A stretch of DNA of 64,000 nt from Selaginella moellendorffii (lineage: Eukaryota; Plantae; Lycopodiophyta): assembly GCF_000143415.4 (NCBI RefSeq), contig NW_003314362.1, positions 333,648 through 397,647 of the forward strand. Reading direction: 5' to 3'. The position numbers and the translations under genes are program-made. Under the pieces are notes generated by a model, which saw only the letters and a program-made list of their open reading frames with translations, searched no databases and had not been told where the DNA came from. Shown one piece after another: positions 5,000-28,200 of the stretch (the stretch's first letter is position 1; every line of letters starts with the position of its first letter).

Positions 5000-5065
5000 C
5001 TAGCATCTATTAATTTTTATCGAGGTACATATTAAAGACCTCTAAGCCATGGTTATAAATGTTAA

Positions 5066-5139
5066 GCTTTCATAGCTCAGTTGGTCAGAGCACCCGTTTA
5101 GTAAGCGGGAGGTCCCGAGTTCAACTCTCGGTGAAAGCA
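5066..5139 (+). tRNA. tRNA-Thr (anticodon AGT)
   Basis: Acceptor stem GCTTTCA/TGAAAGC plus discriminator A; D arm TAGCTCAGTTGGTCAGAGC; anticodon arm CCCGT-TTAGTAA-GCGGG; T loop GTTCAACTC; TATAAA at ~5054 upstream. Confidence 0.95.
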
Positions 5140-5149
5140 GCTTGCCCTC

Positions 5150-5746: not shown

Positions 5747-5867
5747 AAAATAGATCTACCCCCTGAGCTTCTCTCCAAAGCCCATGGTTGGCATCATTCT
5801 TGACAATGATAAAATTTAAATCGAATCTTGACTAGAACTAGTTTTGGACAAACACAAAGATGCATGA

Positions 5868-8372
5868 ATGCGTGGGGGCATTTTGGCGGAGCTCGCTAGA
5901 GTGGATTGCCAAGCCGGCTACGCATCGCTCCTCCAGAGATGCGCGGATCCCAGGCTCTTGCCCGAGGCCAAGCTCCTCCACTCCCACATCGCTCGCCATC
6001 CCCTCCACTCGCGCAGCCTCCTCCTCCGCAACCACATCGTCCACGCCTACGCCAGATGCGGCAGCCTCGCCGACGCGCGCGCCGCCTTCGATGCCATCCC
6101 CGCCAAGAACGTCTTCTCCTGGAGCATCATCATCGCTGCCTACACCCGCCATGGCCACCACCGCCAAGCTCTGGATCTCTTCGACCAAATGGAGGCGAAT
6201 CCCAGCGCTGCGCCGCCGCCCAATGCCTTCGTTCTCTCCACGGCCCTCGGCGCCTGCTCGGCGCTGCGCGATCTGGGCCGCGGCGAGCGCATCCACTCGC
6301 GGATCCAGCAGCGGCGGAGCGATCTTGGAGGGAATATGGTGGTGCTGGAAACCGCTCTGCTCAGGATGTATGCTAGCTGCGGCTGCGTAGTCCAAGCGGA
6401 GGAGATCTTCCAGGCGATGGGCGAGAGGGATGTAATCGCGTGGAACGCGATGATCTCCGCATATGCCCACACCGGGCATCACACCCGGGCATTTGGGATT
6501 TTCCGGATCATGCTCCTCGAGGCGGCGGTGACGCCCAGCGCCGCTACAATCTCCGCCATCCTCGCCGCCTGCCTCGATCTGGGATCCGGGAGGAGGATCC
6601 ACTGCTTAGCGGCATCGATCGGGGTGGAGTCCCATCCATCGGTGGCGATCTCGCTGCTGGGCATGTACTCGCGATGCAGTAGCTCCATCACCAGCGCTAG
6701 AGCGCTGTTCTTGGGCATGGAGAGGAAGAGCCTGGTGGCGTGGAACACGATGATCGCGGCGTGTGCGCAGAGAGGTCTAGCGGCAGAGGCCCAGGAGCTG
6801 TTCAAGGCCATGGATGTGGAGCCGGATGGATTCACTTTCGCGAGCTTGCTGGCGGTGTGCTGCGATCTAGACCTCGGGCGGCGCCTCCACGCCGGGATTG
6901 CCACGGCGCGCCTCGCTTCGCGCTTGATCGTGGACACGGCGCTGGTGGGCATGTATTCGCGGTGTGGGAGCTTGGGCGATGCTGCGGCTGTGTTTGAGGG
7001 AATGGAGGATCGCGACACAGTCGCGTGGAATGCCATGATCGCGGCATTTGCCGAGGCGAGAGATCTAGATCGGGCTATGGAGTGCTACCAGAGAATGCTG
7101 GATCGATCCACTTGTGAGCCCAATGGGATCACGTATGCCACCCTTCTCGCTGCTTGCCGCGATCGAGGTGATCTTGGCCATGGCCGGCGCCTTTTCAAGG
7201 ATGCCCAGGATCGAGGGCTCTATCCCGATCGATTCGTGCAAAGCGCGGCGGTGGCGATGCTCGCGCGGTGTGGCGCGATCTGCGAGGCCAGGAAATTGCT
7301 GCGGGAGGGCAAGATCAGGGACGTGGAGGCCTGGAACGCGATGATCTCGGCTTATGCCCAGATGGGTCATTTGCGCGAGGCTCTGGGAATCTACCGGGAG
7401 ATGGAACACGACGGCTCCAGCAGCCCCGATCTCTTCACCTTTGCAAGCGCTCTAGCTGCTGCAGCTGGGCTTGGAGATCTGGACACCGGGAAGGCCATCC
7501 ACGAGAGAATGGCGGCCGAAAGATCGCTCAAGCTCGATGTCTTCGCCGCAAACGCGCTGCTCACCATGTTCTCCAAGTGTGGCAGCTTGGGCGATGCCAA
7601 GCTCGTGTTTGATCGCATCCCGGACAAGGACGCAGTGTCCTGGAACTCGATGATCTCGGCCTACGCCCACCACGGCCGCTACAAAGACGCCATCGCCACG
7701 TACCGCGCCATGGACTGTCGCCCGGACGAGGCCACCATCGTGAGCGCCCTCGCGGCAGCGTCGGCTCTCGCGGATCTAGACGAAGGAGCTGCCATCCACG
7801 CCCGAGCTCTCGAGCTCGGGATCGCCACTCCTGCGGTGGAGTCCACGCTCGCGAGCATGCACGCCAAGTGTGGGAGCTTGGACGCGGCCATGGCGCTCTT
7901 CGAGAAGAACCGCGAGAAGGATCTAGTCTCCTGGAACGCGATGGTGGCAGCGTACGCGCAGCACGGAGATGGCTCCGAGGCGCTCGCGCTGATCCACCGG
8001 ATGGAGCTGGAGGGGATCTCCCCGAATGGAGTGACGCTGTCCGGGGTGCTGGCGTCGTGCTCCCATGCCGGGCTGCTCGAGCGGGGGATGTTCTACGTGG
8101 GGTGGCTGAGCCGGGAGCACGGCGTGGCGGTGGAGAGTGAGCACTATCGGTTTGTAGTGGAGCTGCTCGGGCGGTGTGGGAGGCTGGGCGAGGCCGAGGC
8201 GGTGGTCCGCGGTATGCCGCTGGAGCCCGAGCCCGCGCTGTGGGTGACGCTGGTGGCCGCTTGCGTGCTCCACGAGGAGGTAAGCCGCGCGGACCGTGCC
8301 GCTGCGGGGTTGGATCCTGGCGACGCTGCGTCTTACGTGCTCCTCGCCAATGTATACTCGGCTGGGATTTGA
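5868..8372 (+). CDS. PLS-class pentatricopeptide repeat protein with E domain (834 aa, intronless, no DYW)
   Basis: Tandem P/L/S motifs (YARCGSLADARAAFD, DVIAWNAMISAYA, PDGFTFASLL), C-terminal HYRFVVELLGRCGRLGEAE...MPLEPEPALWVTLVAAC and E-domain SYVLLANVY. Confidence 0.93.
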   Translation: MRGGILAELARVDCQAGYASLLQRCADPRLLPEAKLLHSHIARHPLHSRSLLLRNHIVHAYARCGSLADARAAFDAIPAKNVFSWSIIIAAYTRHGHHRQALDLFDQMEANPSAAPPPNAFVLSTALGACSALRDLGRGERIHSRIQQRRSDLGGNMVVLETALLRMYASCGCVVQAEEIFQAMGERDVIAWNAMISAYAHTGHHTRAFGIFRIMLLEAAVTPSAATISAILAACLDLGSGRRIHCLAASIGVESHPSVAISLLGMYSRCSSSITSARALFLGMERKSLVAWNTMIAACAQRGLAAEAQELFKAMDVEPDGFTFASLLAVCCDLDLGRRLHAGIATARLASRLIVDTALVGMYSRCGSLGDAAAVFEGMEDRDTVAWNAMIAAFAEARDLDRAMECYQRMLDRSTCEPNGITYATLLAACRDRGDLGHGRRLFKDAQDRGLYPDRFVQSAAVAMLARCGAICEARKLLREGKIRDVEAWNAMISAYAQMGHLREALGIYREMEHDGSSSPDLFTFASALAAAAGLGDLDTGKAIHERMAAERSLKLDVFAANALLTMFSKCGSLGDAKLVFDRIPDKDAVSWNSMISAYAHHGRYKDAIATYRAMDCRPDEATIVSALAAASALADLDEGAAIHARALELGIATPAVESTLASMHAKCGSLDAAMALFEKNREKDLVSWNAMVAAYAQHGDGSEALALIHRMELEGISPNGVTLSGVLASCSHAGLLERGMFYVGWLSREHGVAVESEHYRFVVELLGRCGRLGEAEAVVRGMPLEPEPALWVTLVAACVLHEEVSRADRAAAGLDPGDAASYVLLANVYSAGI

Positions 8373-8559
8373 TATGTTGGCGGGAATTTTTGTAGTCGGT
8401 TAGAGTCTAGGCTGCGTTCCTGGATGCTGATCACCAAATACCACTTGGGAAGCGATGGTGAATTTTCAGCATCCAGGAACGCGTTCACTTGGAGTTCATG
8501 GCGAGGAGGTATATTTTCTTTTCTTGTCTCTGCCTCCATTGCAAAAAAAATTCTATCTG

Positions 8560-10150
8560 TGCAGATGTTTGGCTTTGTTGATCCTATGGTACAGTTTCTC
8601 CTAGGGGACTTGTTTCTGCTTCATTGAAAAAAGATGAGACAGAAGTCAATGTGCAAAGTTCACTGGAAGGAAATAGGAAGCGAGTGTTATCTCCGTGGCC
8701 AGGAGACAAGGGTGCGAACTAAAAACAGACAAGAAGTCGCAAAAGTGTCAAGGTCCTTCTAAGTTTTTATTATATTTTTCTTCTTTTGACAAACTTTTAT
8801 GGACTTACTAGGTCCAGAAGATGTTTATGTCTCGGATTCGGGACCTGAGCTGGAGCCTAAGATTGTGTCCGATACACTGGTGGTACTTCACGTGAGAGAA
8901 GAAGAACCAGTCAGAAAGCATAATTCACCAAATCTAGAGCGTAAGTACAAATAGCTTCCTCATGAAATGCGGCGAGAATCTAATTCTTTTCTTTTACAAG
9001 TGCCAATCGACACCAGTCGGGATCCAGCTCAGAAGAAAATCAAAACAACTCGGACTTGTTTGCCAGCATGATATCTCTGCTACTTCCAAATGCTGTCTCT
9101 CATGAAAAAACGTTCAAAAAGAAAACGCAGAAGTTGACAACGCGGAAAAACCTCAGCAAACAAAGAATATCGATGAGGACACACAATCAATGTGCGGGCG
9201 GAAACATAATCGGTACCACAGTCATCGTCAACAAGCTCACTAGCTCGAATGAGCTTGAACAAGTCACAATGCAGCCCAGCCAGCTCTTAGTAAAGCAACT
9301 GGAGGCTGTCAAAAGGATTCGACAATCACAACAGCCAATGCTTTGGACGACCATTGTGCTGATTTGGACAACAAGCGGTACATTATCTCGGATACTCTTG
9401 AAAGGCTACCAGTGGAGCCTTCTGCTGAAGCTGAAGAAAAGGTCCAGGATCTCGGACATGTCGAATCACTTGATCCAGCGTGCGTGACGGATAGTATACT
9501 TCGGCCCCCAACAATGCTTTATACCTGAAGTCAATACCTTTCACAGGCGCTGGTTCCATTGAGCTACTTGATCTAGAAATTCCGTATGCGTGACGGACAG
9601 TCACACTTCGACCGAACAAGAAAAACAACAATGCTCTAGACCACAAGTCCGGTTCCATCAACGAACAAGCAGTATCTACTACGGCTCAAGCAAAGGATAC
9701 GTGGACTAAACCGGAGCCTGCTCAAAATGATTCCGTAGCCAACGATTTGGCCAAGCAGTCGAGAATATATACTGGCTTTAGTTCCATCAGCCAGGCTCGG
9801 ACATGCTAAAACCCGTCGCTGCTCTTGAGCACGAACTTTCAGTTCTTTGCGTGGCACTCAACGCAAGGAGTCAGGAGGTGGATGTTTGCGGCTCTTGTAG
9901 TAAAGCATGGTGTACAATTACATGCATACCGTGTTTTTGGAGCAGAGGCTTGTTCTGTGTTTCTTTCATCTTGGTACATTTGGCTTTATTTTCGCAGCTG
10001 CAAGCGGAGTTTGGAATTTAGCTCACTCCAGATGGCGACGGCCTTCTTTGTTCATAGCCCCAAGCTTCCCATATAGTGCGGGTGGTTTAACAGTCTTTGG
10101 TCGGTGCTGGAGATGAAGGTTGTGTATCCAAGAATGGCGCATGGATTGAG
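8560..10150 (+). other. Possible multi-exon hypothetical gene or pseudogene (acidic low-complexity region, Cys-rich C-terminal motif CGSCSKAWC...CIPC)
   Basis: T-rich intron-like tracts ending in AG (~8810, ~9000, ~10190) and partial open frames; no family recognised. Confidence 0.25.
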
Positions 10151-10348
10151 GTAATTGTTTTTCATGTTTGCATTAATCACGTCCTATTCAGGCATTCTCT
10201 GTATGAAACACCTGCAAGATATAGCTGGAAGACTTTTCAAAGCATTTTTAAACCTAGCCATAGTTCCTCATGAAAAGCAAGGATGGCTAACTTTGATGCA
10301 CACCTTTTTATCATTTTAAAATCTATTGTTCTTACAAGAAGAAAAATA

Positions 10349-11905
10349 GGTTTCTTTGAGGGATTGAGTCAAAAACATATTTCACCGCACTGGGCGTTTG
10401 CTCGGAGCATTCCAGTCCACCCCATAACATCGTGCTGTGGCAGTCTCTCATATATGCCTCTCGCAAGATTAGTGCAGCCATGCTGCGCAAAAGAGTTGAC
10501 AGGTGTTGCCCATGACACGGAATCTCTCTGCGACATCCTCGCAAAGAACTTTTGTGCTTGCATCCGCAGCGATCATAGAGTTCCGTAGAACTGGATTGCT
10601 CAGTATTTTTGTGTGTGAGAATCATGATCTCGTTCCATCCTGACAACAGCTTCTTTGCTTCGAGAATCACATTCCACGACACAGAGTCTCTCAGGCATGT
10701 TTTCAAATTGGTTTCTAGCCTCGCTAATCATTCCAGCTTTCGCAAATAGCATTCATGCAAACTACGTGCCACTCTGGAATTCGATAAAAAACAAGCCTCG
10801 CTACGTGAATTTGCCGGCTTTGGGCATTTGCTGAAAGAAGCGCATTCATTCTTCCCGGGCATGGACTCCAAGACGCGCTTGGCCTCGTGAAGCTGCTGGT
10901 TGTGAATGTAGGCCTGGAGTGTCGATTTCCCGCTGGGATTCCTGCGGTCCAGTGTCGATCGACAGAGGGATTCCATCCGTGGTCTCGAATGCGTCCAGAG
11001 CACGAGGGATTCTTCGCCAGGTGACGCCCAAGATCCAAGCGTTCCAGGCAACTACATTCTCGCCTCAACCAGGCAGCCAGACATGCCCATCAAGCTGCAA
11101 GGAACGTAGAGATCACTGTGCTGCTTGGCTCTCTGCGAGGCTTGCGCTCCTTGATTCCCTCCACTCGGGCACAATGGAGCTTGTTCCTGGAAGCCATTCT
11201 AGTCTTGCTCGCTTGCCTGAGCCCAGCAGCGCCTTCCATGGTTAGCACGCTTATGGAACAATATCCTTGTGGAGCGGATCAACGCTGCCTTTGTGCCCGT
11301 GCTCGCAGTGCACAAAGGGCTCGAGTTTTAGTTCCATCTCGATAAACAATAAGTTTGTTTTCCAGGTGATTAGATTCTGGAGATAAACAATAGGCAGCGC
11401 AAAACTTTTGAGAAGAGAAAGCTGTTCGCTCTCCCAAGTCTTAGAATTTTCTCTCCCGGATCGACGACGCTGTCGAGAGAATCTGGAGCACAGCAGCGAT
11501 TCTCGCAGTTTGAAACGAAAAAGTCGTGAAACTCGTCACGATATCTCAATAGCTTCTTGTTCTTGCTCAAGTTCCTCGAAAAACTCTTCGAGCGCTCTCT
11601 CGTCTCCTGCCCGAGTAGCAAGGCCGATGGCACGGGTCCATAGCCACCAGGCAGCGTACGTGTTGGCCAGAAGCATGCACGACTGCGTCTTCTTGTCTGG
11701 AGCGAAATGGTTGATGTAGTTTGTCACCCGCAGTGCTCGAGCGATGTCGCTGTGCGTTTTGCAGGCACTCGGCTCGAACGGCATGTTGCAAATCATATCC
11801 TCGGCGATTTCCAAACGCCCCGCTCTTCCCAGAACGTCGAGGAAGCAACCATAGCACTCGTTTGCAAAGCTAACTCCATAGTCCCCTATTATACAAAGAA
11901 AGCCA
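10349..11905 (-). pseudogene. Degenerate PLS-PPR pseudogene fragments (also at ~34620-36176 and ~58150-59712)
   Basis: Frameshifted motifs RDSVSWN, QHDVMGWTGML, VFDSIPQRNL, and E-region YGCFLDVLGRAGRLEIAEDMICNMPFEP...MLLANTY. Confidence 0.8.
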
Positions 11906-11915
11906 AACCAGTCAG

Positions 11916-12175
11916 TCAGCCCCACACCATCGCCACCGCGTCCTGCTCGCTCAGATCCATTGACAAGCTTAGCTCCCTAGCACTGAGCTTGAGCTTGCAA
12001 ACTTCCTGCTCCAGCTTGTGTATCTCGTCCCTGTGAGCCCGCAAGTCCGCCTCGGACTTCCTCTGTATCCTTTCCACTCTTTGCTTGGCCGCCGCTTCGG
12101 CTTTCTCCCTGGCTAGTTTCTCGGCCTCCAAACGCAAGAGTGCCTCGTCTTTGGCCTTCTTGTCTTGCCTGCTCC
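11916..12175 (-). pseudogene. Coiled-coil fragment resembling RF298/RF4/PIR-type RING E3 ligases (also 36187-36446 and 59723-59982)
   Basis: DEALLRLEAEKLAREKAEAAAK...KSEADLRAHRDEIHKLEQEVCKLKL resembles the pre-RING coiled coil of that family (recalled, not searched). Confidence 0.5.
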
Positions 12176-13310
12176 TACCCTGTGTAGTGTTCATGGAAGT
12201 TAACACATGAATGCGAGGGAAGTATATGCGTACCTCGGCTTGGTGCTGGGACTCTTGTATTTCTGATGTATATGGTCAATCCACCTGTCGCGCAAACAGG
12301 TTTGCAGCTCTTTTCTCTCTTTACACTGCCTTTGTGTCCTTTCACTGCTCTTTTGATCCCTTTGACAGAGTGCCAACTCCGACATCCAGGTGACGGCGTC
12401 CTTGAATTGGACCCCCTGGAAGAGCGGCAGACGCCTTGGGAGCCTTCCACAAGATGGAAGATTGAGATGTTTTCTCGTGGAACATTGCGACGGCGGCATT
12501 TGCCCGATGCGAGAAGCGGTGGCACTCATGCTTCTTCATTCAACGCCTCAGATCCACGCGGTATTCGTCGCCGCTGGCCTAAGATAATGAGCTCGCATTT
12601 GCCCCACTGGTCTCCCACGAGGTTCTGCCAGCCAGCTCCTGCAAGCTTTCGCCCAGGATCTTGGGAAGCTGAAAGCTGAGGCACACAAGCAAGTACCGCA
12701 GAATCTCCATCGCCACAGTGCTGCTCAACGTCTACGGCAAGCTCACGCCACGATCAGCAGCCGCACTTTCCATACATTTCCATGACGAGATTAGCGAGGC
12801 CGCTGGAGACGATTTCCTCCCAGAGATCTGTGCTCACCGACCGCATCCTTGACAAGGCGTCCGCTCCTCATTCCTGCAAATCGGAAGGATAACTTACACA
12901 CAAGCAATCGAGATTTATTCTTTCCTTTGCGTGATCTTATGCGTGAAAGACTTTCCCTTCGAAACTCCTGTGCAATGGAGCAAGCACCAAAGGTGTGTTA
13001 GAGGGAAACCAAAATCAACGTTTTCTGGTGATCTTCTCATTCCAGGTATCTCGCAGAGCAGCTCTTCCAAGGGCCCGTCTTTGTATGCGACTATCAAAAC
13101 GCGTTTCATAGCGATGATGGCCAGATGGCGGCATGCTAGTGCGCGAGGCGGGAAAAGGCTCCCTCCCACAAGCTCGCCGACCTGGAAGAAAAACACGACT
13201 TTCAAGAGCTCTGGCTTTGATTCTCCTGGGGAGCCAGATGCAAAGGTATGGGGATTTGAGAGTTTCGTAAGACCTCCGGGCCACTGAAATGGTGTGCTTG
13301 ATTCTTGCAG

Positions 13311-13450
13311 GCTCGTATGTAGAAGAACTACATACGAGTGGTACTGGATTGGCGACGATGGGATCGTGAAGCACTCTGGATTCGGGCTGGGATTTGAGAG
13401 GATGAGTAGAGAACATCGGGGATGTGATATTTCCTGGAAAGGCCAATCAA
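13311..13450 (+). pseudogene. Asparaginyl-tRNA synthetase C-terminal fragment (also 61118-61257; split by the insertion in copy 2)
   Basis: YEWY...GIVKHSGFGLGFERM followed by ENIGDVI..FPGKA matches class II aaRS motif 3 of AsnRS with small deletions; preceded by a TTGCAG acceptor-like site. Confidence 0.75.
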
Positions 13451-13541
13451 TGGATCACAACGTTGACAAGAGTATATGCTGATAAGTCACCGTCACGAAA
13501 GCTGTCACAGGAATATTCTTTAGGAGATTTTCCTCATGGTA

Positions 13542-14339
13542 TTAATCGAAAAAGTTTATCGCCTCCACAAGGCTCTGAACACTCATGGCCTTTACTTTGG
13601 CCAAGGCGTTGGCGTCAGCAGCCAAGGAATTACTGTTGAGTTTAGCGGTGAAGCTGGTGATGGTTATGGTGGCTTCCCAGGTGGTGATCTTCCCCGCCTT
13701 CTTTGTCATGGTGGCGTCCGCCCAATACATATTTAACTCCGGGTTTGTGGCTGGCGACCTGAAGGAGAAGAGCGTGTACAGCGCCCGAACACTAGTGTTG
13801 TCCTCGACGTGCGCAAACGTAGGGACGTGCAGCAGCGCCTTTTGCAAAGTCTTGGTAATCTGGTTAGCGGTCTCAGTGTCGTGGGTGCGCTGCAGGTAGT
13901 CGCTGACGTCTTTCCAGATCGTGTCGCAGCTGCCAGACATGTCCTCGCTGGCCGCTGCCGTGAGGTAAACATACTGCGGGAATGTGGTGACAAGCACTGT
14001 CAGAAACTGCTGGAAATGCTTGGCCTGTTGGCTGGCCTCGGCGGGATCGGTGATGAGCTTTGGAGAGTAGTGGGCGAGTTGCATTCCAACAGCCGTAAAA
14101 GTTGCCAAGGCGTGGACATGGAACTTTGGTAGCTTGTAAACCTCGGCATTTGCTCCAGGAAGAGGCGGGGCGTTCACAGCAATAGCTACAGGAATGTAGA
14201 CATCTACATCAGTGGCCACATGAGCGTCAACATGCAGGAATCGTGCTCGAGAGACCGCCTTGGAGTTGGAGCTCACGTTCCTGAACACCTCTAAAGCGTG
14301 ATTGAACTCATTGTTATTCATCAGCAATGGCAGCGCCAT
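13542..14339 (-). CDS. Gene A copy 1: 265-aa intronless protein, paralog of gene B; putative Cyt/Evf-like pore-forming fold
   Basis: Intact ORF from the ATG at 14339 (MALPLL...INFFD); TATATAAAG ~75 nt upstream on the minus strand; clear homology to gene B. The fold call is inference. Confidence 0.8.
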   Translation of the reverse strand: MALPLLMNNNEFNHALEVFRNVSSNSKAVSRARFLHVDAHVATDVDVYIPVAIAVNAPPLPGANAEVYKLPKFHVHALATFTAVGMQLAHYSPKLITDPAEASQQAKHFQQFLTVLVTTFPQYVYLTAAASEDMSGSCDTIWKDVSDYLQRTHDTETANQITKTLQKALLHVPTFAHVEDNTSVRALYTLFSFRSPATNPELNMYWADATMTKKAGKITTWEATITITSFTAKLNSNSLAADANALAKVKAMSVQSLVEAINFFD

Positions 14340-15061
14340 GAATATAAAAGCGGGATAAAGAGCAGAGTGATCTAGAGACAACGAGAAAGGAGCGGATGTT
14401 CAGATGGGTAGTCATTCCAGCTTTATATACCACCAAGAGCTTGAGCATGCAAAAAACGATGTCAATTGCAATGAATGATCAAGGACATGGGGCCATCTTG
14501 AAGTTCCAAGGAATGACAGTGAAATATCACTTTCTTAATAGAATGCTATAGTTTTTGAGATTGCAAGATCATAGCTAGAACTATACATCAGCCTACGTAC
14601 CCTTGCAAAAAAAACATATCATAAATCATCAAGGACATGGCCCCAATATGGAATGACTGTGAAATATCACTTTTTTGACAGTCATGCTATAGCAATGTTG
14701 AGATTGCAAGATCATAGCTGGTCCAGCATGACATTTTTTTGTTTTGCAAGGGTACGTATGTCGTCAAGAGCTGGAATGACCCATTGCAATTGACAAGTAA
14801 GTATATGCCCTTGCAAAAAAAAAATGTCATGAATGATAAGGGACATGGTTTATATATAGGGCTTTAATTTCGACAACCTGCTTGACAAAAGAGCCTTTAG
14901 TGGCTATTTTATCTCTATTTATCCCCCAAGGTTTTAAGGATCCATGATGACAATATATTTAAATATTATCTTATGATCACATGCGCTACATTAAAGATTG
15001 ACAATGTAATATACAGCATGCTATACTTGTTGAGATTGCAAGGTCATAGCTACCAACCTAT

Positions 15062-16726
15062 TGTAAGCGACTAATTTTTCTTTTTTACTTTAGTCACTTA
15101 ACTGCACCTTCAACCACTTGGAGGAGTCTCATTCACAACCTCCATAAGTCCCAGTTAGGACTTGGGGCTTGCCAGCCCTGAGAATGGCATCCATGCCACT
15201 CAACCTTTGCATTTGGTCCAAGTGCTCCACGTGTCCGATCCCATGACCGACACCCCAAGGTACCACCGACATACCAGCCTGTTATGCTAGGCCATGCCCA
15301 TTCACCTTGGTCACACCGGTGGTCTAACGCCACCTACATCATAATCCCGTCTCTCAAAGACTGGGCCATCCATCCATGAGCAATCATCCTAGATCTACTC
15401 CTTAGCATCCTTATGATGCCCGCAGACATGGGGAGTAGCCTTCCCCAACAACTCTTTTCCAGTCCCCACCAAGTCCCTTTTAGTCCATGACCGTGTTCGC
15501 CAACACTGCCACTGGATCAAGGCCTGCAGGCCTGACCGCGAAGTCCCACTATCCTTTGGGACTTCCTCACCATGTGACCGTATCCTTGGTCACTACATTA
15601 GAGGCCTACTCCTCTTCCCTTTCACCGTTTGGGACTTTGGGACAACATTTCGGAACACCGTGGCCTTACGCAAACCTCATGGGTACTCTCCCCACCTTTT
15701 GCCTTTAGGTGCTCTAGCCATGGGCTTAGAGCGAGGTTCCGTTGAGCCACGACAGGTATCCAAGTAGGTAGTGCCACCCACACTTGGATTGGGAGTATCG
15801 GCCAGTCGATCTCCCGGGGGAACTAGAGCCGGCTTTTGAACACTTCACCAAGCTACCCCGCTTGTCGGTCCGTGTTCACTCTAGTCTTGGACTTCCCAAT
15901 GGGCAGCTCATCACCCAACACTGGGTCTGGCCTTCCTGGGCCAAACTAGCCTTTCCTGGCCAAACTGGCTCCACTGCAGTCCTCCCCCTAATATACTTTT
16001 GGAGCTCACCAAACCCCCCAGGGTCTGGGAGACGAACGCTTTGGGCTTTCACCCTCTCAGACTTGAACTCGGACTCGGACTTGGACTCGGACTCGGACTC
16101 GGATTCGGACTCGGACTCGGACTTGGGCTCGGTCTCAGCCTCGGCCTCGGTCTCGGTCTCGGTCCCGGTCTCGGTCCCGGTCTCGGTCTCAGTCTCGGTC
16201 CCGGTCTCGGTCTCGGTCTCGGTCCTGGTCCCGGTCTCGGTCCCGGTCTCGGTCTCGGTCTCGACTTCGGACTCCATCTTGGGTCCATCTCGGACTCTAT
16301 CTTGGACTCCATCTCGTGTCCATCTCGGACTCCATCTCGGGTCCACCTTGGACTCCATCTCAGACTCCATCTCGGACTCCATCTCCAGTCTATTTCGGAC
16401 TCCATCTTGGACTCCATCTCGGGGTCCTTCTCGGACTCCACTTTGGACTCCAACTCGGGTCCATCTCGGACTCCACTTCGGACCCCAACTCGGACACTTC
16501 CACGTGTCATGTGTTGGTCCTTTTGGGTCCCTTTTTGGAACCTCGCTTATTGCTCGCTTCGTGCTCGTTCCTTGAGCACTTCGTTGGGAGTTCCACTCCC
16601 GCTCTCAACCTTTTAAGTCGGAGCTTTTAGTCCAAACGTGTTACACTCGTTTGGTTTTCGCTTTGGCCACCACCACATGGCACACTTCCGGCTCCACTTT
16701 GGGGCCTAGGGATTTCGTGTCTCACA
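15062..16726 (-). mobile_element. Solo LTR (1.67 kb), same family as the LTRs at 39281 and 45113, specific to copy 1
   Basis: TG...CA termini, 5-bp TSD CCTAT (15057-15061 and 16727-16731); empty site in copies 2 and 3; internal hexamer minisatellite. Confidence 0.92.
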
Positions 16727-16786
16727 CCTATATACCCTTGCAAAAAACATTGTTATAAATTATCATGGACATGTGGGCCCCAATCT

Positions 16787-16899
16787 TGAAACGAACAAGC
16801 GAGCAAACCTTAGGCCAACCTCCCAACCCTTAAGGCGTTACAGCCTTATATTCCACAAGCCATAGAATATTTTAAAAATAATCCTATGGTTTCATGTCA
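16787..16899. mobile_element. Solo short LTR (113 bp) of the same family as the 37701-49432 element; present in all three copies (51125-51237, 62924-63036)
   Basis: TGAAACGAAC...CATGTCA with TSD AATCT on both sides; aligns with LTR 37701-37812. Confidence 0.9.
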
Positions 16900-17964
16900 A
16901 ATCTTGCTTGGCATACAATACACCCTTAGCCCTCACAGAAATCATTAATTATGGCATTGGACCAGACAAGGGCTAGAAATGTACACCATCCAGCATGACA
17001 TTTTTTTTTTTGCAAAGGTTTTTTGCAAGGGTATGCATGTCCTCAAGAACTGGATGCAATTGACAAGTATGTACATACCCTAGCAAAAAATAAAAATAAA
17101 AAATTTGTGAATGGTCAAGGACATGGGTGGTCCCCAATTTTGACAACCTCAAGAGGTCAAATTCAGCTTCATTGTTGAGATTGCAAGATCATAGCTACCA
17201 ACCTACATACCCTTGCAAAAAACATTGTCATAAATTATTAAGGACATGGGCGTAGAGCTGCTACAAGTGGGCCCCAATCTCACTTATAAGAAATGATGGT
17301 GAAACATCACTTTCTTATCACTTTAGGGTGTCCTGACAAATACTAATGGTTGCCTCTGGCATAATTAATTATTTCTAAATCATTAATTATGGCATCTAGG
17401 TCCAGACAAGGGCTAGAACTGTACACCAACCTATGTGGTCCAGCATGACATCTTTTTATTTTTTGCAAGGGTTTTTTGCAAGGGTACGTACGTCGTCAAT
17501 AGCTGGAATGACCGCTCTGCCCTTGACGAGTACATGCAAAACAAATGTGTCATGAATGATCAAGGACATGAGCTTAAAGAATGACGGTGCATGCTATAAG
17601 CATGCCTAGAGTATACCAATGCAATTTTGTTTTCAGTCTCTGCAAATGGACTCACTTTTATTATGCAGCACAGATCTGGCTGTTGATAATGTCACATGTT
17701 CAAAGTTGACATACTACCAAATTCTGAGCTCCAGCTATAAAGATCCCAGTGATCCATCACAGTTAACACCAAGGCCTGTTATTTGATCTCCTTTCACGTC
17801 CAGCAATTGTGTGTTCAGTCTTTCTTTCCCCTCTCAAACCTTATTCTCACAAGTGTGCTTCTGCAGGTAGATCTTGAACAATTCCCTCTTTGCAGGAGAG
17901 CAACTCTTCTATTGACTTTCTTCTCTTTCTCAGTCAAGCTCGAGCAGGCCACAAGAGCAGAACA

Positions 17965-18804
17965 ATGGGAAGCCTACCACAGCTTCTCAGTGAGGACGAG
18001 GCTCGACACAACCTACAGGTTTTCACTAAGTCTGCCATGATTTCAAAAGCTCGCAGCTACATCCGCTCATCTCAACCCCTGTCAGTAGTGATAGAAGTAC
18101 CGACAAATAATGACATTGTTGCACCTGGGGCCGAAGTTGTGAATGGTCCTGATGACACTGCGTCGTCACAGCTGGAGTTCTACAGAAACCCCAAGTACCA
18201 CACTGACGTCCTTGCCACCTTTATTGCCACAGCGATGTCTATTGCTAAATATGTTCCACTACTGACGGAGCTTACAGACCAGGCCAACAAACAATCGGAG
18301 GATTTTGCCAAATTCCTCCAGATCCTGGTGTCCACTTTCCCGCAGTATGTTAAGTTTGCAGGAGCAAGCAGCATCGCCATCGAGAACAAGTCAAGTTATA
18401 ATCAGTTACTGTCAACGGTGCATGACTTCATACAGGAGACTGCTATTGACCCGTCTAAAGCTGGTGCGGGCGTGATCCAAATGATCAAGAATGCAACCCA
18501 TGCCATGGATTCTACAGTAGAAGGCAGCTACAGGCGTTCACTCTATACTTCATATTCTTTCCAGGGCCGTGCTCGCAATCCCCAAACGACAATGTACTGG
18601 AGTAGTGTCAACTTGGAGAGGAACCGCAGCGGCAAGACTACGTGTGTGTCTGCTGAGCTGAAGATCGTCCGCTTTACCGTTGAGGTCATCAGTAATTCCG
18701 TGATTGCTGATGCTCATATCCTGGCAGAGGCAAAGGGCCGGGCAGCCCAGGAGATTGCGGATATCATAAATGGACATATAAATCCGTCCAAGGACAATCA
18801 TTAG
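17965..18804 (+). CDS. Gene B copy 1: 279-aa protein with uninterrupted CDS, paralog of gene A; putative Cyt/Evf-like pore-forming fold
   Basis: Intact ORF from ACAATGG at 17965 (MGSLPQLL...KDNH); CTATAAAG at ~17735; pyrimidine tracts ending in CAG suggest 5'UTR intron(s); homologous to gene A. Confidence 0.82.
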   Translation: MGSLPQLLSEDEARHNLQVFTKSAMISKARSYIRSSQPLSVVIEVPTNNDIVAPGAEVVNGPDDTASSQLEFYRNPKYHTDVLATFIATAMSIAKYVPLLTELTDQANKQSEDFAKFLQILVSTFPQYVKFAGASSIAIENKSSYNQLLSTVHDFIQETAIDPSKAGAGVIQMIKNATHAMDSTVEGSYRRSLYTSYSFQGRARNPQTTMYWSSVNLERNRSGKTTCVSAELKIVRFTVEVISNSVIADAHILAEAKGRAAQEIADIINGHINPSKDNH

Positions 18805-21800
18805 AGAGCTCTGTTGGGGCCGTAAGCCAAATGATAATGAATGGAAATTTGCTCTAAGTATATAGGTATATGGGAAGTATGTAAAAGGAAAATTGGTAAT
18901 AAAAAAGTCCATAAATATTATTAGATGCAGTGATTAAAAAATTAATTAAGAGATCCATAAATATTTAAGTTACAAAGGTGTGAGTGGGTGACCACTCCAA
19001 GGTGGATTATAGTTTCAACACAAGCTTTATCATAGTGGATACTCTACAAGGTTGTTGCACAGTTTGTTGAAGCAGGACAATATTGCTTCCCTCTGCTCTT
19101 CTTGGCATAAAAACTTTTTGGACCAATATTCAGTTTATTTAGCATTTTACCAGGAAACTTTACATGTAATTTTCTCTCCCTTATTAAATTTGCCATCGTT
19201 AAATAATAGGTAAAGCATTAAATTAGTGGCCACCAGATTATTTGGGTATGATATGTTGTTTCTCAAACTCATCCATAGTAAACACATGTGGTTTTTTATT
19301 TGCAACGCAAGACTCTTCAAGCTAATTCCACCACTGAAGACTCGTATCTCGCAAAACCATTGGAATAACCACTAAAGCCTTTGCATCTAGAGCTCTTTAG
19401 GCAGCCAAAAACTTCTTCACATCAGCTAGTCAAGCTAAACATTTATCCACACCACCATCACTGAAAAAATTACAATCATAAGTCAATCCACTAAAGAAGG
19501 CTTCCTTAAAGCACCACCACCACTGGCCTTGAGTACCTCAACACACTCTACCATTGTAACCATCATGCCATGCATCTCCTTTTGCGTCTCTTTTGGTCAA
19601 AATTGGTACATAACAACCTTCCTTTCAGATTCCGAGGTGGAGAGTGAGGTGCATATGCCATGACCCTTAGGCAATAGTGTTTCTTCCCAAGGTCCCAAAG
19701 TGTGCAACACACCTAAAGACTCGGGATGTTAAAGTGGTCTATGAACAAGTTTTGTGGAACCTTGGGAAGTTAGGATCCTAGAGGCTTGGAATGTTTGGTT
19801 TGCTTGTGCATGAGAGGCTTCAATACCAAATTGTAAACCATAAATTTTTTCAAGCAAATTATTGACTCATTTCTATCCTTAATTCTAGCAAAGAATAAAA
19901 GCAGATCACTAAGTGATAGCTATGCCAGAGCAAAACCCTTCCCAGAAACTTAGGACTTAAAGTTCAATTACATTTCCCATCGATCCACCACCTTCACTTT
20001 AGCTATAGATAAGATCCCTTTGCCAAGGTCCACTTCTAGGTACCACTGTCTACTGGATCCTTACTCGCTTAGCTAGTTATTACATACATACAAGAGTGTT
20101 AGCCATTTCTCAGTAATTTCCTCAATTGCTCTCCCAAACCCATACTATAGTGGAGGACAAGCCTCCTATGGAACAAGAACCGATGGAGGAACCTATGGAT
20201 GAGGTTTTGGTACTGGAGGAGGATCCTAGTGAGGAGACTTCTAGGCAAGAATTGAGTGGTGAGGCTCCTTCCTCCATTGGTATCAAAGGGAGGTTGGTTG
20301 TGATGGCTGACCAATAGAAATGCTAGAATCCTAATGACGAAGGTGGTCACAATAGTGGAACTAATGAAGCTACAGAGGTTTGGATTACCCATGATGTTTT
20401 GTATAAGCTGCAAGCCCTCAACAAAAATTAGCAAGAGATGCAAGAGAAGATGCATGGCATAATAACTATGATGGGAGAGTGTGTTGAGATACTCAAGGTT
20501 GGTGGTGGTGGTGCTTCAAGGAAGTCTTCTTTGGTGGATGTAGCACATGTGGTTTTCACCCTTTATCCTATACTATAGGATAATTATGAAGTGGACCGTA
20601 AACCCTTTATATGCTACATATCATATACCACATGTCTAAAGATAGTGGAGTAGAATTTGAGTTTCAAGGCCTTGGGGCCACTGAATGAAAGAATGGAGCC
20701 AAACTTCCAAAGTTAACCAAGGAACGAAAGAACTGAAACACGGTGCAACTCTTGAGCGTTCAACCTAAAAAGTAAAGGGACAAGAGTATGGAGCGATATA
20801 AGAACAGTCCTAAAGTATCTAATATTCCAATGCTAGGACCAACATACAAAACGAAGCTAAACAGAGTCTAGCGCTATTTTAGCATACTGATGGCCTAACA
20901 CGAGGATATGGGTACCATGGTATGAAACTTGGGCTTAGACCCAAGCCAAATGCAGAACAAAGACATGCATGCAAGTAGGAGTTAAACTATACCTCACGTT
21001 GGTCAGCCACACTTAATCTACCCACTATCCTTATTATACATTTGGAACTGTAGCACATGTGGTTTTGACCCTTTATCCTATGGTGATTTACCATAGGATA
21101 ACACCACGGAGTGGAACCTAAACCCTCTTTGTGCCATGTGACAGGTGCCACGTGTCACATACCACGTGTCCATGCCACGTGTCCATAGGAACCCGAGGTT
21201 CAGGGCCTTGGGGCCACTGAACGAAGGAACGGTGCCAAACTCCCAAGCACGAAGCCAAGGAGTGACGGAACCGAACCACGGAGCAACTCCTGAGCATGTA
21301 GCCCAAAGAGCGAAAGGACAGGAGCCCGGAGCGACTTGGAACAGTCCTAGAGTAACCAGCATCCCAATGCCAGGACTAGCATGCAAAACGGAGCCAAACG
21401 GAGTCTAGCGCTATTTCGGCATACCGGTGGCCTAACGTGAGGACATGGGTACTCCACTAGCTAGCATGGAATGGAACTTGGGCTTAGACCCAAAACAAGG
21501 ACAGGCACGCAAGCGGAAGCTAGATTATGCCTCAGGTTGGTCGGCTATGCCCGACCTACCCACTATCCCTACTATACATTTGGAACCCCCCACAGCCCTT
21601 CCCCCCCTCCTTGAGGAACACACGCTTTGGGCTTTCACCCCAAGCCTCCCTTAGTATCAGGAGTTAGTCTCTGGAACAAGCTCGAAACTTACTAAATATG
21701 GAATGACGCTAGATTGTGAATTTGGACACGGGACGAACACCATTGTGTTCAGGCCGATCTCTACATTTCGTAGATATGCCAAATGAGCAAATCTGGACAC

Positions 21801-24800
21801 TTTCCATAAATAGTAGTTGGGACCGAAATGAGACTAACACAAAGGGCATGATAGCGAGGGTGTTTGGCAGACACAGTAAGCTATCATCTAGCGATATTGA
21901 GGGACCAAGCTCAATATCGCGGGGGTTCCCAACACTAGCAAGTGCAAGCCAACATCATGAGTTTCTCATCACCGTGTCAAGTTTGCTTGACTAAATGACA
22001 ACTTAGGATTTCCTTCCTTAGTGCCCTTCCAGTCTAAGTGCACATGTGATGACCAGTTTCTCAACTAGCTTAGGCAGAGACTGATAACAGGTCCAGTAAT
22101 ACCGACCTCTTGCCATCGTGGTAGTAAGGTAAGAGTGTCCGTAAGGATTGGTCGACAGGTAGTTTTCAATACCCGAAGTCACATTCGCGACACTCTCCTG
22201 CATACTCGAGTCTAGAATACCGCCAAGGAAACAACTCCAGAAAAAGTTCACGGTACTTACACTATGTGAGAAATGCACTAACTTAAATGAGTTAGGGGTA
22301 ACCTCTTTGTCTAACGCGGATGCGCTACCAGCTCAGACACCTTCCGGCCGTCGCCGACAAGGAAATGACCAACGGAGTGAGCCACCCTTGCTGCTCTGGT
22401 TGTCATCTAGCTTACAAAAGTGTGATATGCCCTGCCCATAGAGACATAGAGAGAGGAGCCAGGGGCCCCAACCCTTCTGAGCAAAAAAACCAAACCCGTC
22501 AGTAAGGTTTAGATAGACTACTGTAAACATGCAATTAGAGTTGTTTACACGGTCACGCCCGTTCAACGGAATAAGGAATATCGACAAAGAGGCGGGTTAT
22601 GTGACCAGTCGACAGTAGCTACCCCATGACTAGAGATTTCACCATGCACACGAAGTCCCGAAGCCAGTCTGCCTATACTGGCCCAAACTCAAAGATCAAT
22701 AGATGGACAATATCAAAGTCATAGACAATGATATCTTAGAGGCTTAATTATCAGTGAGTATATCTTAGAATAGAACACAAAAGTATTCTAATTAAGTTGT
22801 CATCCGATAAACTAGTATTATAGGATAGGAACCACCAAGATCATCATCTTTGGAAACATAGGATGGACCATCCAACAAAGTTCAATAGCAAGTATATCAT
22901 TAAGGAAACTCAATGATGAAACTTAACTACCAAAGATGGCAGATAGTATGCGAAACAACTTACTAAAGATAACTCAAAGAACACAAAGTATCATTGACTA
23001 GCAAGTAAGATGCTCGCGAATGTATCACCCGAAGGAAATAACATCTCAATCGATCAGAACTAACTCGAGCAACAATCAACAGAATAGAATGAATGTGGCA
23101 AGTCCAACAAACACTCGTTTATGCCAACTATCACACTAGCTAATCTGAATAGATCCCAATCAACAATACAAAGGAACCAAAGTTGTTTAAGCAAGTGTCA
23201 GCAATATCCTTTTGATGTCTCAAACCCAAGAGACCAATCCAGAGCAAATCACAAAGAACACGTGGTATTGCAAAAAGCCAAAAGCCTTCAAAGAGAATAA
23301 CGAACCATCATGAAAGACCATCAATCATCCCATCAATAAAGAGATGCATAATCATCATTGAAGAAAGAATTTACCATCCCAAAGAACAGTAACTCAGTTT
23401 ATTTTAACAATAATCAAGCAAAACTCTTGACAAGGATAATCAACTATCTTAGATGATAGTTAATCATCACCAATGAGTGTTAGATGCAAAAGCTAACTTC
23501 AACATCGAAACTAATGAGCTAAAATGCCTTCCCCAACAACTTCTAACAAATGGAACAATGAGCATAAAACTCAAAGAACCAAAAGCTCAAAGAAGCTTAT
23601 AGCCAAGTCGTACCTAATAATGATCACAAGTCTTGCATAACTAATTCCAATGTTAAAGAAGAAATCATGGTACAACCCACAATATCTTCCTCAATACATC
23701 CATAAGCTAAACTTCATAATGCTAAAGTTAATGAAGAGCATGTTTGCATTAATCCAAAAGCCAAACACCATGGAGCTATGCTCAACAAGTGATCACAAAA
23801 CGATCCTCCATGAATCCATCTATAGCAAAATGTAACTCACTTCATAACAAGCATAAGAAGAATCATTAATGATTGATATATTCCAACTCAAATCCAACAA
23901 GGATTCAAACTTTCCAATATCAATCATTAACTCTTCCGCTTGTAGAGTTAGCATAGTCCACGACTGAATCACTTTTCAAGGAAAAGCCAAAGCTTAACCC
24001 CTACTAAATAATCCTGTCTAGAACACAACTAACTCAAACTTGCCATTTAGTTCGTTTGAACGTCAACACAGTTGCTAACTAGCAAATGCATGAATGCCAA
24101 CAACATAAAGCTACAACCAAATCATCAACACTATCTCTATCGAGACTAATGAAACTCAATATCAATCGAGAGAGAGATATCTCATTTCACTTGAATCTCA
24201 ACATCAATATTGTCAACGGCAAGGCATCACTTCAATGTCATCAACACCATAACAAAGTTAAACGAAAGCACGAGTGAATCACCACTCAAAACTCTCTAGC
24301 AACTAAGCTAACCAAAGTCGAAGATACTTTACTCAGCATCCGAGACCAATCCTTCAGCAAAACTCAGTTACAGATAACACTTCCTCAAGGAGTGAATCAC
24401 CACATCCAAGACTCAATGAAATCCAACACGATAGACTAAATGCAACCAAATGATATTAACAGAGGTAGAATCAACATGCCAACATGGAAAACCCATGTAA
24501 GTCTAACAACACGATCCTCCACAACACCATCCGGTAAAGCAAGCCCATCACTGCTAATTCTTCATCGAGTGAAGCAAGTATCAATAGTCCTTGACAAAGT
24601 CTACAAGCAATCACTAGTTGCAAAGCAACCAACAATCACTCTTCAACTTGCCTTCACAAGATCTAACACTAAACTCATGTCATCAAGTTATATACTCATC
24701 CAACATAAACATAATACCTCAAGTATGAGATAAAGGTTTATGGACAAGCATAACAAAATGACCACTCAAATCCAACTCAACCGCAATAAGCTCACTAATG

Positions 24801-25219
24801 CATTTAGCCACTAGCTCTGAGCATGCCTTGAAGAGGCTAGCTATGCATGATCAACACTAAGCCGAAACTAATATGAAGACCATGAGATGAACTCATATCG
24901 GTACACAACCTCCACTTGGTCAAAGCTATAGTATGGGTACCAACATCTTAAACTCAAACAACTAAATTGGACATCACTATCCTCAGCCAAGGCGCAAAGC
25001 CACCAAAACCAAGTCAAGATCAGTGAGAGCTCACTACTCTCATAGAGTCTAACAAAGTGCAAGGTGCAACCTGCCACCAAGCATAACGCTATAGAAGAAA
25101 GGCACAAGGGTCACCCTTCTTAGAAAAGTGCAATAGCCACTTTTCTACACCAACTCCAAACTCTATCCAACTCAATTGCCTTATCCCCAAAAGTTAGCAT
25201 CCCTTTCGGGCCGCATCAT

Positions 25220-28200
25220 TGTAGCGCACCTGAATTTGGAGCCGAACTCCAAGCCCGTTGCGCTACGAAACGAGGGTCCAGTACAATCCCACGAGCACCA
25301 GCTCCCCGTATCCAGCACCTGCACGCAAAATGGTGTCAGACGGAGTCTGGCACAATTTTGGCATACCGGTGGCCTAACGCGAGGAGGAGGGTACTCCACC
25401 GACTAGAGCAGCGTGGAGCTTGGGCTTAGACCCAAGCCGGACGCAGAACAAGGAGCGACACAACCCAGCGGGAGCCAAACTAATGTCTCAGGTGGTCGGA
25501 CATGCATTCCAACCACTATCCCTACTATACATTTGGAACCCCCCACAGCCCCCCCCCCCCCCCTTTAAGGGACATACGCTTTGGGCTTTCACCCCAAGCC
25601 TCCCTTAGTACCAGGAGTTAGTCTCTGGGACAAGTCCGAAACTTACCAAATATAGAATGGCACTAGATTGCGAATTTAGACACGGGACGAACACCATTGT
25701 GTTCAAGCCGACCTCTACACTCCGTAGATATACTTTCCATAAATAGCATTTGGGACCGAAATGAGACTAACACAAAGGTCGTGATAGCAAGGGTGTTTGG
25801 CAGACACGGTAAGCTATCATCCAGCGATATTGAGGGACTAGTCTCAATACGCGAGGGTTCTTGCCAAGTTAGTGCAAGACAGAGCAAAAGAGAACTAAGA
25901 GCCAGGCCAAGAATGCTCAGCTAAAAACACATAGGAGTTCCTACCTTATGTCTATCTGGCTAAGTACAGATGCTAAGCCCAGTAAACTAACACTTGGACA
26001 AGAGGGGCCAATAAAGGGAACCAGTAGTACTGACCTCCTGCCGTCATGGTAGTAAGGAGAGAGTGTCCGTAAGGACTAGTCGACAAGTATCTTTCGATAC
26101 CCAAAGTCACATTCGCGACACTCTCCCCCCCTTAGGGAAGATCGACGTCCTCGTCGATGTATACCCGAGTCTAGCAAACCGTCAAGGAAACAACTCCGAA
26201 AGTTAACGGAAAGCACACTATGTGGGAAACACACTAACTTAAATGAGTTAGGGAACGACCTCTCCTCTACGTCCAAAGACGTTAAGACTCAGACATCCTT
26301 CGGCCGTCACCGACAAGGAAATGACTAACAAAGTTAACCACCCTTGCTGCTCCGAGTACCACTCAGCTTACAAAGGAATGATACATCCCTGCCTGCAGGG
26401 ACATAGGGAGAAGGCCAGAGGCGATCTCCCCTGAGCAAGAAATCAACCCCGTCGGGAAGATTTAGATAACTACTATAAACTGGCAGATTAAGTTGTTTAC
26501 ACGACCACACCCCTTTTCGAAAATGAGTCATCGAGAGAGAGGCGGGGACTTGTGATCAGTCTATAATAGTTATCCCCATGGTTATGGATTGGACCCATGC
26601 ACCGAAGTGCCGAAGTCAGCCTGCCAAAACTGACCCAAGTACGAACGAACGAGAGAAACAACACTTTGATTTACAGAAATATATATGACTTTATTAATTT
26701 GCAAGATTTATTACAAGATTTACAAAAGCTAGTTTTTATTACGATTTTCATACTCCGTGACAAGCTCATGAGCATGTGTAAGATTCCTAAGAGGTTCCCA
26801 AGTTGATTCACAAGTCGAGTAACCTTTCCACTTAACGAGATATTCCTTCGCATGAGCCTGTCTCCGAAACCGAGAATCTAAGATAGATTCAGCTTCGTAC
26901 TCAGGTTCACCATCCACGATTACTGGCGGAGGATGCAAATCCGTAGAGCGTTCCACAGCAGCATGATATGGTGCTAGTAAACTGACATGAAACACATCAT
27001 GTAGCTGAGATAACTCATCCGGAAGATCCAACTTATAGGATACATCACCAATGGGTTTTAACACCCGATAGGGTCCAATATATCTCGGCAAGAGCTTCCG
27101 AGACAGAGAACCCTTAATGTTCAAATTCTGGGAAGATAGCCACACCTGATTTCCCACTTGATAGGATACATCCCGACGATGCTGATCCTTATCACATCGA
27201 TACCTATCTTGAGCTTTGCCCATCGCCTCAGTTGCCCTAGACCAACCTTGATGTAGCTGCTCCGCATAAGTCTCAACGGCCGGGACCAATACCTCGGACA
27301 TTGGTTTCGGTATAACAATCTGTTGGGGAACCCCACGAGCATTCCCTTGCAGCATCTCCCATGGAGAACAGCCTATAGCGCTGTGAAATGTGTTGTTATA
27401 ACATATTTCTGTTGTATCCAAATGCTCAACCTAGTCGCGTTGGTCTGCCGCAACATAGTACCGCAGATAATCCTCAACTTGAGCATTCACACGTTCGGTC
27501 TGCCTATCAGTCTGAGGATGATAAGCCGTACTAAACTTTAACTTGGTACTGAACAATTGGAACAGTGTGCCCCAAAACTTCCCCGTAAACCTTGAATCTC
27601 TATCTGAGATCATCTCTTTAGGAAGACCACGAACCCGCACTACTTCATGGAAAAAGAGTTTTGCTGCTTGTTTCGCATTCACTGTTCCCACAGTTGGAAT
27701 GAAGTGTGCAATCTTTGACAACCGATCCACAACCACCATCAAAGTATCGTAACCCTTAGACTTCGGCAAGCAAGTGACGAAATCAAGTGTCACACTCTGA
27801 AATGGTCATGCCGGTATTGGAATGCACTGCAACTTTCCAGCCTGCTTCTCAGCTTTGCACTTACATTGCTGGCATATAGGGCAGGAACGGACATAGTCCA
27901 CTACATCACCTTCCATACCAGACCAGAAAAATCCCTTTTTTAACGAAGCCAGAGTCTTTTGCTGTCCACCATGTCCTGCTGCTGGAACATCATGATGTTC
28001 CCGCAGAAATAACTGTTGAAGATCCTTAGAGGGAAGGTACAATCTTTCTTGCTTATAGAATATAAGCCCATCCCGAACTGAGAAGTGAAGCTTCGCATTA
28101 GTGCGACTAGCAACTTTTGCTGCTTTGCTACCAGGGCTCCGCTTCAACAACCCCGCACGGCATAAGATTGCCTTCGCCAATGGATCACTTCCATACGAAG

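Follow-up and report, generated by a model that had tools for sequence, protein, structure and literature searches.

We predict that a small family of eukaryotic proteins, represented in the lycophyte Selaginella moellendorffii by two adjacent genes that we call A and B, adopts the fold of the Cyt, Evf and volvatoxin A2 cytolysins, and we regard this prediction as highly probable. The genes lie head to head in plant nuclear DNA, within a window of 64,000 nucleotides (the whole stretch that was analyzed). The wider reading that we favor is that the family is a new eukaryotic cytolysin-fold clade whose members could serve as cytosolic defense proteins that target lipids or membranes, amplified in tandem; we put its chances at about even. 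The two coding sequences (CDSs) on which the analysis is built, each given with the open reading frame (ORF) that contains it, are:

13542–14339, minus strand: gene A, copy 1; intronless CDS of 265 amino acids plus stop, ATG at 14339 (full ORF 13542–14381)
17965–18804, plus strand: gene B, copy 1; intronless CDS of 279 amino acids plus stop, ATG at 17965 (full ORF 17890–18804)

An earlier, sequence-only reading of this DNA had described A and B as intact, intronless paralogs in head-to-head arrangement, and the ORF coordinates and an end-to-end BLASTP alignment bear this out (36% identity and 53% positives over the full length, E 2e-45). The alignment takes in all of the matching segments cited in that reading. 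Nonsynonymous divergence between the two genes (dN) is 0.68 and synonymous divergence (dS) is saturated, and both frames are open across 265–279 codons. Because the frames are fully open despite the saturated synonymous sites, we consider A and B to be maintained coding genes. Neither protein has an N-terminal hydrophobic stretch on the Kyte-Doolittle scale, in agreement with the earlier statement that both lack a signal peptide and a transmembrane helix; the highest 19-residue means (1.29 for A and 1.67 for B) fall inside predicted amphipathic helices. The start codons of both genes and the C-terminal helix are backed by the family alignment.

Predicted fold and its known relatives

The helices and strands of A and B had been likened, from the sequence, to the alpha-beta fold of Cyt, volvatoxin A2 and Evf, and structural modeling now supports this likeness. 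B was modeled with AlphaFold2 on an alignment of 23 family sequences, with a mean predicted local distance difference test (pLDDT) score of 76.6 (72–77 across the five models) and a predicted template modeling score (pTM) of 0.79. From its N terminus the model shows a helix and a strand, then a helix hairpin, another strand and a further helix hairpin, followed by three long strands of 11–12 residues each and C-terminal helices. Both the hydrophobic periodicity of the four long helices and the alternation in the final strands are kept throughout the family. When the model was compared by Foldseek with 350,542 chains of the PDB, the top 12 matches, and 13 of the best 14, were to Evf (2w3y), Cyt1Aa (6t1a, 6t14, 6t1c and 3ron), Cyt2Aa (1cby), Cyt2Ba (2rci) and volvatoxin A2 (1pp0, 1vcy and 1pp6), all with a probability of 1.00 and with a best E of 1.6e-5. 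The remaining matches had probabilities below 0.25.

Among these relatives, the Bacillus thuringiensis Cyt proteins (Cyt1Aa, Cyt2Aa and Cyt2Ba; 3ron, 6t1a, 1cby and 2rci) resemble the B model in forming a single alpha/beta domain in which two helix hairpins flank the sheet and three long strands lie near the C terminus, and Cyt2Ba gave the best template modeling (TM) score, 0.57. They are also similar in size to A and B (~190–280 amino acids) and likewise have no Sec signal peptide. Unlike Cyt, A and B are eukaryotic nuclear genes whose products have an extra N-terminal helix, a loop of ~50 residues and an invariant set of His, Pro and Phe motifs that is specific to the family, and they show no detectable sequence similarity to Cyt (8–14% identity in the structural alignments of the B model with its fold matches; no Cyt or toxin model matched in Pfam or NCBIfam). 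Evf of Erwinia/Pectobacterium, which shares the best E with Cyt1Aa (6t1a), aligns over 278 columns and is of similar length (267 amino acids). It differs in being bacterial, in sharing only 10% identity and in having a palmitoylated cysteine with no evident conserved counterpart in A and B. Volvatoxin A2 of Volvariella volvacea (1pp0/1vcy; E 3.9e-5, TM-score 0.46) is a eukaryotic, fungal protein of the same fold, but it is shorter (~190–200 amino acids), is without the N-terminal extension of B and is linked to the family by no sequence search. Cyt-like proteins also occur in early-diverging fungi, as in CytCo of Conidiobolus obscurus (PMC8157652). CytCo belongs to a different sequence family from that of the Mortierellaceae and plants described below, and no sequence search linked the two. 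Since there is no sequence-level link, the family would form a new clade of the fold, outside the Pfam Cyt family.

Several observations weigh against reading A and B as cytolysin-fold defense proteins. The TM-scores of the fold matches are modest (0.33–0.57, the best to Cyt2Ba) and their root-mean-square deviations are high (5–11 Å). Only B was confidently modeled; the model of A, based on a two-sequence alignment, had a pLDDT of 35 and was not used. None of the 23 family members matched a Cyt, Evf or volvatoxin family in Pfam or NCBIfam, even at E≤10, and searches of PDB sequences with family profiles gave no match to Cyt, Evf or volvatoxin A2. Exact-protein look-ups for A and B returned the genome assembly only, with no transcript of either gene. 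We infer the toxicity of A and B, and any function for them, from the fold alone. To our knowledge, Evf, one of the two best-scoring matches, is not an established pore-former, and thus the fold by itself does not imply toxicity.

If the fold match were a false positive, the family would be a conserved alpha/beta protein of unrelated function. We think this improbable. It would be in keeping with TM-scores that mostly fall below 0.5, an alignment of just 23 sequences, a pLDDT of 53–72 in the helix C/D region and the missing sequence or profile link to Cyt, but it is countered by the concentration of 13 of the 14 best matches, among all the PDB chains, in one fold family at full probability, with a sharp fall thereafter, and by the pTM of the model. 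The order of its elements past the extra N-terminal helix also matches what we take to be the Cyt topology.

The B model was also compared with BFVD, where it matched uncharacterized proteins, several of them from giant viruses, with probabilities of 0.9–1.0 and low TM-scores. These include UniProt M1I283 and M1HBT0 and entries of Marseillevirus, moumouvirus and Edafosvirus type. Cytolysin-like folds may, on this modeled similarity, also occur in large DNA viruses.

Distribution and origin of the family

A and B had been regarded as orphan genes, but they have homologs at another Selaginella locus and in ferns and Mortierellaceae. Pfam and PDB sequence searches with the single A and B sequences gave nothing meaningful, and a word-indexed protein search with B alone found only B itself. 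A hidden Markov model (HMM) profile of A and B, searched against 1.84 billion representative proteins, yielded eight other proteins. One of these, a bacterial protein with a type IX secretion system tail (P0007), was rejected as spurious (hhalign probability 0.5%). The relatives are SELMODRAFT_410290 and SELMODRAFT_410291, which form a second head-to-head pair in Selaginella; hypothetical proteins of Adiantum nelumboides and A. capillus-veneris; proteins from Logan and ENA assemblies; and hypothetical proteins of 271 amino acids from the Mortierellaceae (Podila, Linnemannia, Mortierella, Actinomortierella and Haplosporangium). The family is thus small and eukaryotic, with proteins of ~250–350 amino acids that have no signal peptide, and it spans lycophytes, ferns and Mortierellaceae. 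No bacterial or archaeal relative was found among the 1.84 billion representatives with the HMM, and none in bacterial and archaeal genomes and metagenomes by pattern scans, which have low sensitivity.

Sequence identities within the family are 15–35% overall and 15–25% between lineages. In a neighbor-joining tree the sequences cluster by lineage into fungi, ferns and Selaginella, with A and B as sisters, from which it follows that the duplication that separated them occurred within the Selaginella lineage. A and B are 34–36% identical to each other and only 21–24% identical to either SELMODRAFT_410290 or SELMODRAFT_410291. Each has one cysteine, in different alignment columns; another feature of the family alignment is a cysteine that is common to most plant members and absent from the fungal ones. 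Introns interrupt the fern genes at common positions, and the fungal gene has one as well, which identifies the family genes as resident eukaryotic genes. In locus L004 of Podila verticillata (KN042433.1), a family member at 8001–9019 of the locus has a diverged tandem paralog on the same strand at 5304–6068 (hhalign 95.9%). A possible third relative, on the opposite strand of this locus at 3542–4216, shows only a weak match to the C-terminal motif, in a comparison of one exon ORF. A fern-like member was also found, uninterrupted, on a Logan contig of 1,936 bp (SRR8185329), and is 59–61% identical to three Adiantum proteins (P0024–26). It is probably a transcript, since its Adiantum relatives carry introns and it does not. 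It gives a hint that ferns express the family.

The suggestion that the pair was possibly acquired horizontally gained no support, as no bacterial relative was found and the fern and fungal members carry introns; a recent bacterial origin of the family is not supported. The patchy range (a lycophyte, ferns and Mortierellaceae) is compatible with an ancient exchange between fungi and plants and also with vertical inheritance and later loss, and at 15–25% identity between lineages the sequences cannot choose between the two. Any such transfer would be ancient. Derivation from a transposable element or virus was considered and rejected: A, B and the ten largest other ORFs of the repeated unit described below have no Pfam domains, and the copies result from tandem segmental duplication. 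The fern and fungal homologs are intron-bearing genes at ordinary loci, and the transposable elements that are present are insertions into the unit.

Possible roles in defense or lipid binding, and the two-component model

Cyt, Evf and volvatoxin are grouped as three clades of one cytolysin fold in which a lipid pocket is conserved, and the mechanism proposed for it has the helical layers moving aside and the beta-strands inserting and oligomerizing (PMC5390079). By analogy with the fold, A and B would each be a soluble, cytosolic lipid-binding protein, kept by the plant as a stored defense protein. When the protein meets a target membrane, for instance in tissue that is eaten or invaded, its helical layers would peel away from the sheet, and the three long strands near the C terminus would then insert into the membrane and oligomerize. 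The two genes would have arisen by an inverted local duplication in the Selaginella lineage and would later have been amplified jointly. They would be diversified variants that act singly or as homo-oligomers, rather than as obligate partners, with copy number raising the dose.

Alternatively, the fold may be present with no toxin role, in which case A and B would be Evf-like intracellular lipid-binding or membrane-associated proteins. This seems unlikely to us, as do the physiological roles that would go with it, namely lipid storage or transport, membrane remodeling or stress protection. The Mortierellaceae are oleaginous fungi, which we count in favor of such a role, together with the absence of a signal peptide in A and B and the palmitate that is covalently bound in the pocket of Evf, a joint-best match. 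In addition, the lipid pocket has been proposed as an ancestral feature of the fold (PMC5390079). However, the patchy range, rapid divergence (down to 15% identity) and lineage-specific tandem amplification of the family are more typical of defense or effector genes, and the acylated cysteine of Evf does not appear to be conserved, with the single cysteines of A and B occupying different alignment columns.

The sequence-only reading had gone further and cast A and B as a candidate two-component system driven by one bidirectional promoter. That A and B are obligate subunits of a binary Cyt-like pore-forming toxin with a shared bidirectional promoter is, in our judgment, very improbable. The regularity that speaks for it is the recurrence of diverged paralogs in head-to-head arrangement at three plant loci:

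A (−) and B (+): Selaginella, this window
SELMODRAFT_410290 (−) and SELMODRAFT_410291 (+): Selaginella, GL377577.1 (locus L001)
GOP47_0020702 (−) and GOP47_0020703 (+): Adiantum (locus L002)

If orientation were random (1/4 for each locus), three head-to-head arrangements out of three would have a probability of ~0.016, and A and B have always been co-amplified as one unit. The spacer of the second Selaginella pair also speaks for the binary model, having been enlarged by a Ty3/gypsy insertion: pol ORFs for RNase H, integrase and protease lie between the two genes, at 4855–8174 of locus L001 (GL377577.1). Because this insertion swelled the spacer, it was originally short. Yet the pairs number only three, and the pairing regularity is no stronger than suggestive. 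The pairs are not orthologous, given that A and B are closer to each other than to SELMODRAFT_410290 or SELMODRAFT_410291, so there is no conserved partnership of an A-type with a B-type protein. As sisters from a lineage-specific duplication, A and B are not a conserved pair of distinct partners. This speaks against the proposed two-component system, as does the existence of solo fern members (at the loci of P0004, P0024 and P0025 the gene stands alone within 10 kb). The fungal paralogs share one strand and are arranged in tandem. SELMODRAFT_410291, the plus-strand gene of the second Selaginella pair, lacks a continuous ORF: read straight through, it contains one in-frame stop, which is bypassed by an intron in the annotated model. 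A partial extra copy lies directly upstream of this gene.

The spacer between A and B bears on the promoter part of the proposal. Its features in copy 1 are:

14340–17964: A-B spacer of copy 1, 3.6 kb by the ORF coordinates; presumed promoter region
15062–16726: solo long terminal repeat (LTR) of 1,665 bp in the copy 1 spacer, with TG...CA ends; the site is empty in copy 2

The promoters of A and B are presumably located in this spacer. In copies 2 and 3 it measures 1.94 kb, and the length of 3.6 kb in copy 1 is due to insertion of the solo LTR, which is flanked by a 5-bp target duplication (CCTAT, at 15057–15061 and 16727–16731). The solo LTR is confined to the copy 1 spacer and is outside the gene pair proper. 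Genes that share a bidirectional promoter are usually less than 1 kb apart, and even the uninterrupted spacer exceeds this distance, which counts against a single promoter for the two genes. Relatives of the solo LTR occur at 39275–41026 and 45769–46925. The element is rich in simple repeats of dinucleotide type, which give rise to long spurious ORFs at 15784–16630.

No hetero-oligomeric Cyt system is described in the literature consulted, and a precedent for clustered paralogs, the cyt cluster of Dickeya dadantii, points away from obligate partners. The cytA–D genes are diverged cytolysin-fold paralogs that arose by local duplications and were kept as a linkage group, and CytA, CytB and CytC have each been reported to be toxic to aphids (PMC5390079), so that clustered paralogs are reported there as individually active. 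The cluster is similar to A and B in being a local group of diverged paralogs of this fold; unlike A and B, it is a bacterial operon on one strand, was acquired horizontally and has clear homology to the Cyt proteins of B. thuringiensis. The boldest combination would be a fourth, unrecognized cytolysin-fold clade, anciently exchanged between fungi and early vascular plants, whose co-regulated head-to-head pairs form hetero-oligomeric pores. We rate this as a long shot. If true, the hetero-oligomeric reading would make A and B the first Cyt-type system with two components, and also the first Cyt-like toxin of a plant. The repeated head-to-head pairing is otherwise a small, curious regularity that expression data could explain.

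Fern insecticidal proteins with folds like those of bacterial toxins, such as IPD083 and IPD113, provide a precedent for defense proteins of this kind (PMC6669613, PMC10622923). Neither is a Cyt-fold protein of ~270 amino acids: IPD113 is a two-domain, Cry-like protein, and IPD083, at 867 amino acids, was ruled out by its length as an identity for A and B. Another fern insecticidal protein, IPD079, is a MACPF protein and likewise not a Cyt-fold protein of this size, and PtIP families from Selaginella appear in the patent literature. In the open literature, with patents not covered, we found no description of the A and B loci or of Cyt-like proteins in Selaginella, ferns or Mortierella, and no report of a cytolysin-fold protein in a plant; the fold has been described from bacteria (Cyt and Evf) and a few fungi (volvatoxin A2 and CytCo). 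If the predicted fold holds, a family that is invisible to sequence searches would bring early vascular plants and Mortierellaceae into the range of this membrane-active fold, and genes that are all annotated as hypothetical would gain a testable structural hypothesis. It would also add to the examples of ferns and lycophytes with defense proteins that resemble bacterial toxins, and would pose a tractable evolutionary question, that of ancient fungus-plant transfer versus massive loss.

The tandem array and its surroundings

Contrary to the impression of a single pair, A recurs twice and B once within the window, which thus holds three copies of A and two of B, and further copies of B lie beyond it; the pair sits in a tandem unit of ~11.8 kb. 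The additional copies and the one unit that is free of insertions are:

49550–50347, minus strand: gene A, copy 2, encoding the same protein as copy 1 (ORF 49550–50389)
52287–53126, plus strand: gene B, copy 2, with no nucleotide difference from copy 1 (915/915 over ORF 52212–53126)
61349–62146, minus strand: gene A, copy 3; one amino-acid difference (ORF 61349–62188); its B partner lies just past the window end
49433–61231: single uninterrupted tandem unit of ~11.8 kb with A and B, from self-BLAST

The three A copies are identical to one another at 837–839 of 840 nucleotides. Exact-protein matches locate the window on scaffold GL377666.1 (GCA_000143415.2), at roughly 333.6–397.6 kb. On this scaffold, whose annotation gives the B product as 279 amino acids, there are at least four exact copies of B; two of these are outside the window, at a spacing of 11,816 bp. 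In the self-BLAST comparison, 61232–64000 matches 49433–52201 at 99.7% and 58155–62868 matches 10348–15061. A and B were amplified jointly, after their duplication, as a tandem unit of ~11.8 kb, and retrotransposon insertions have since split units 1 and 2. Between copies 1 and 2, B has no differences in 840 nucleotides compared to 18 in 2,000 in its flanks (p=0.003), which is further evidence of coding constraint; unlike B, A shows no contrast with its flanks. The remainder of the unit had been dismissed as debris, and this is consistent with the ten largest other ORFs, none of which has a Pfam match.

Annotation of A differs among its copies. SELMODRAFT_447836 (579 amino acids, 11539–14339, minus strand) joins the first 248 amino acids of A to downstream exons with no recognizable domain, and another copy of A is annotated at 265 amino acids. 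The longer model was rejected for A and is probably an over-extended gene prediction: it splices out the C-terminal helix, a conserved feature of the family that is encoded by the last 17 codons of the uninterrupted ORF, and none of its extra exons matches Pfam. The reading of A as 265 amino acids is better for these same reasons. Residues 475–542 of the 579-amino-acid model are weakly similar to the 3' end of a pentatricopeptide repeat (PPR) gene elsewhere in the window, and on this similarity the tandem unit may contain a PPR-derived fragment.

The PPR gene itself (5868–8372) is intact and intronless, encodes 834 amino acids and lies inside a GC-rich island (64%); a tRNA-Thr (AGT) gene precedes it at 5066–5139. 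A Nop14 fragment and ORFs for Ty3/gypsy integrase and chromodomain are also found within the window. An LTR retrotransposon at 21046–32137, inserted in tandem unit 1, has direct repeats at 21046–22192 and 31001–32137 that are 92% identical, and carries a Ty3/gypsy ORF for integrase-SH3 and chromodomain at 26729–27421. In unit 2, a block of 11.7 kb (37702–49432) separates the segment before A from A. This block has direct repeats at 39816–41027 and 45714–46926 (99.75% identical), integrase ORFs at 47408–48616 and an assembly gap of 353 N at 45360–45712, and probably consists of one young LTR element or several. Adjoining the end of an LTR-like repeat, 46989–47076 on the minus strand is a weak match to 5S rRNA (39.9 bits against a gathering score of 38; 88 nucleotides of a 120-position model), which could be a 5S-derived fragment.

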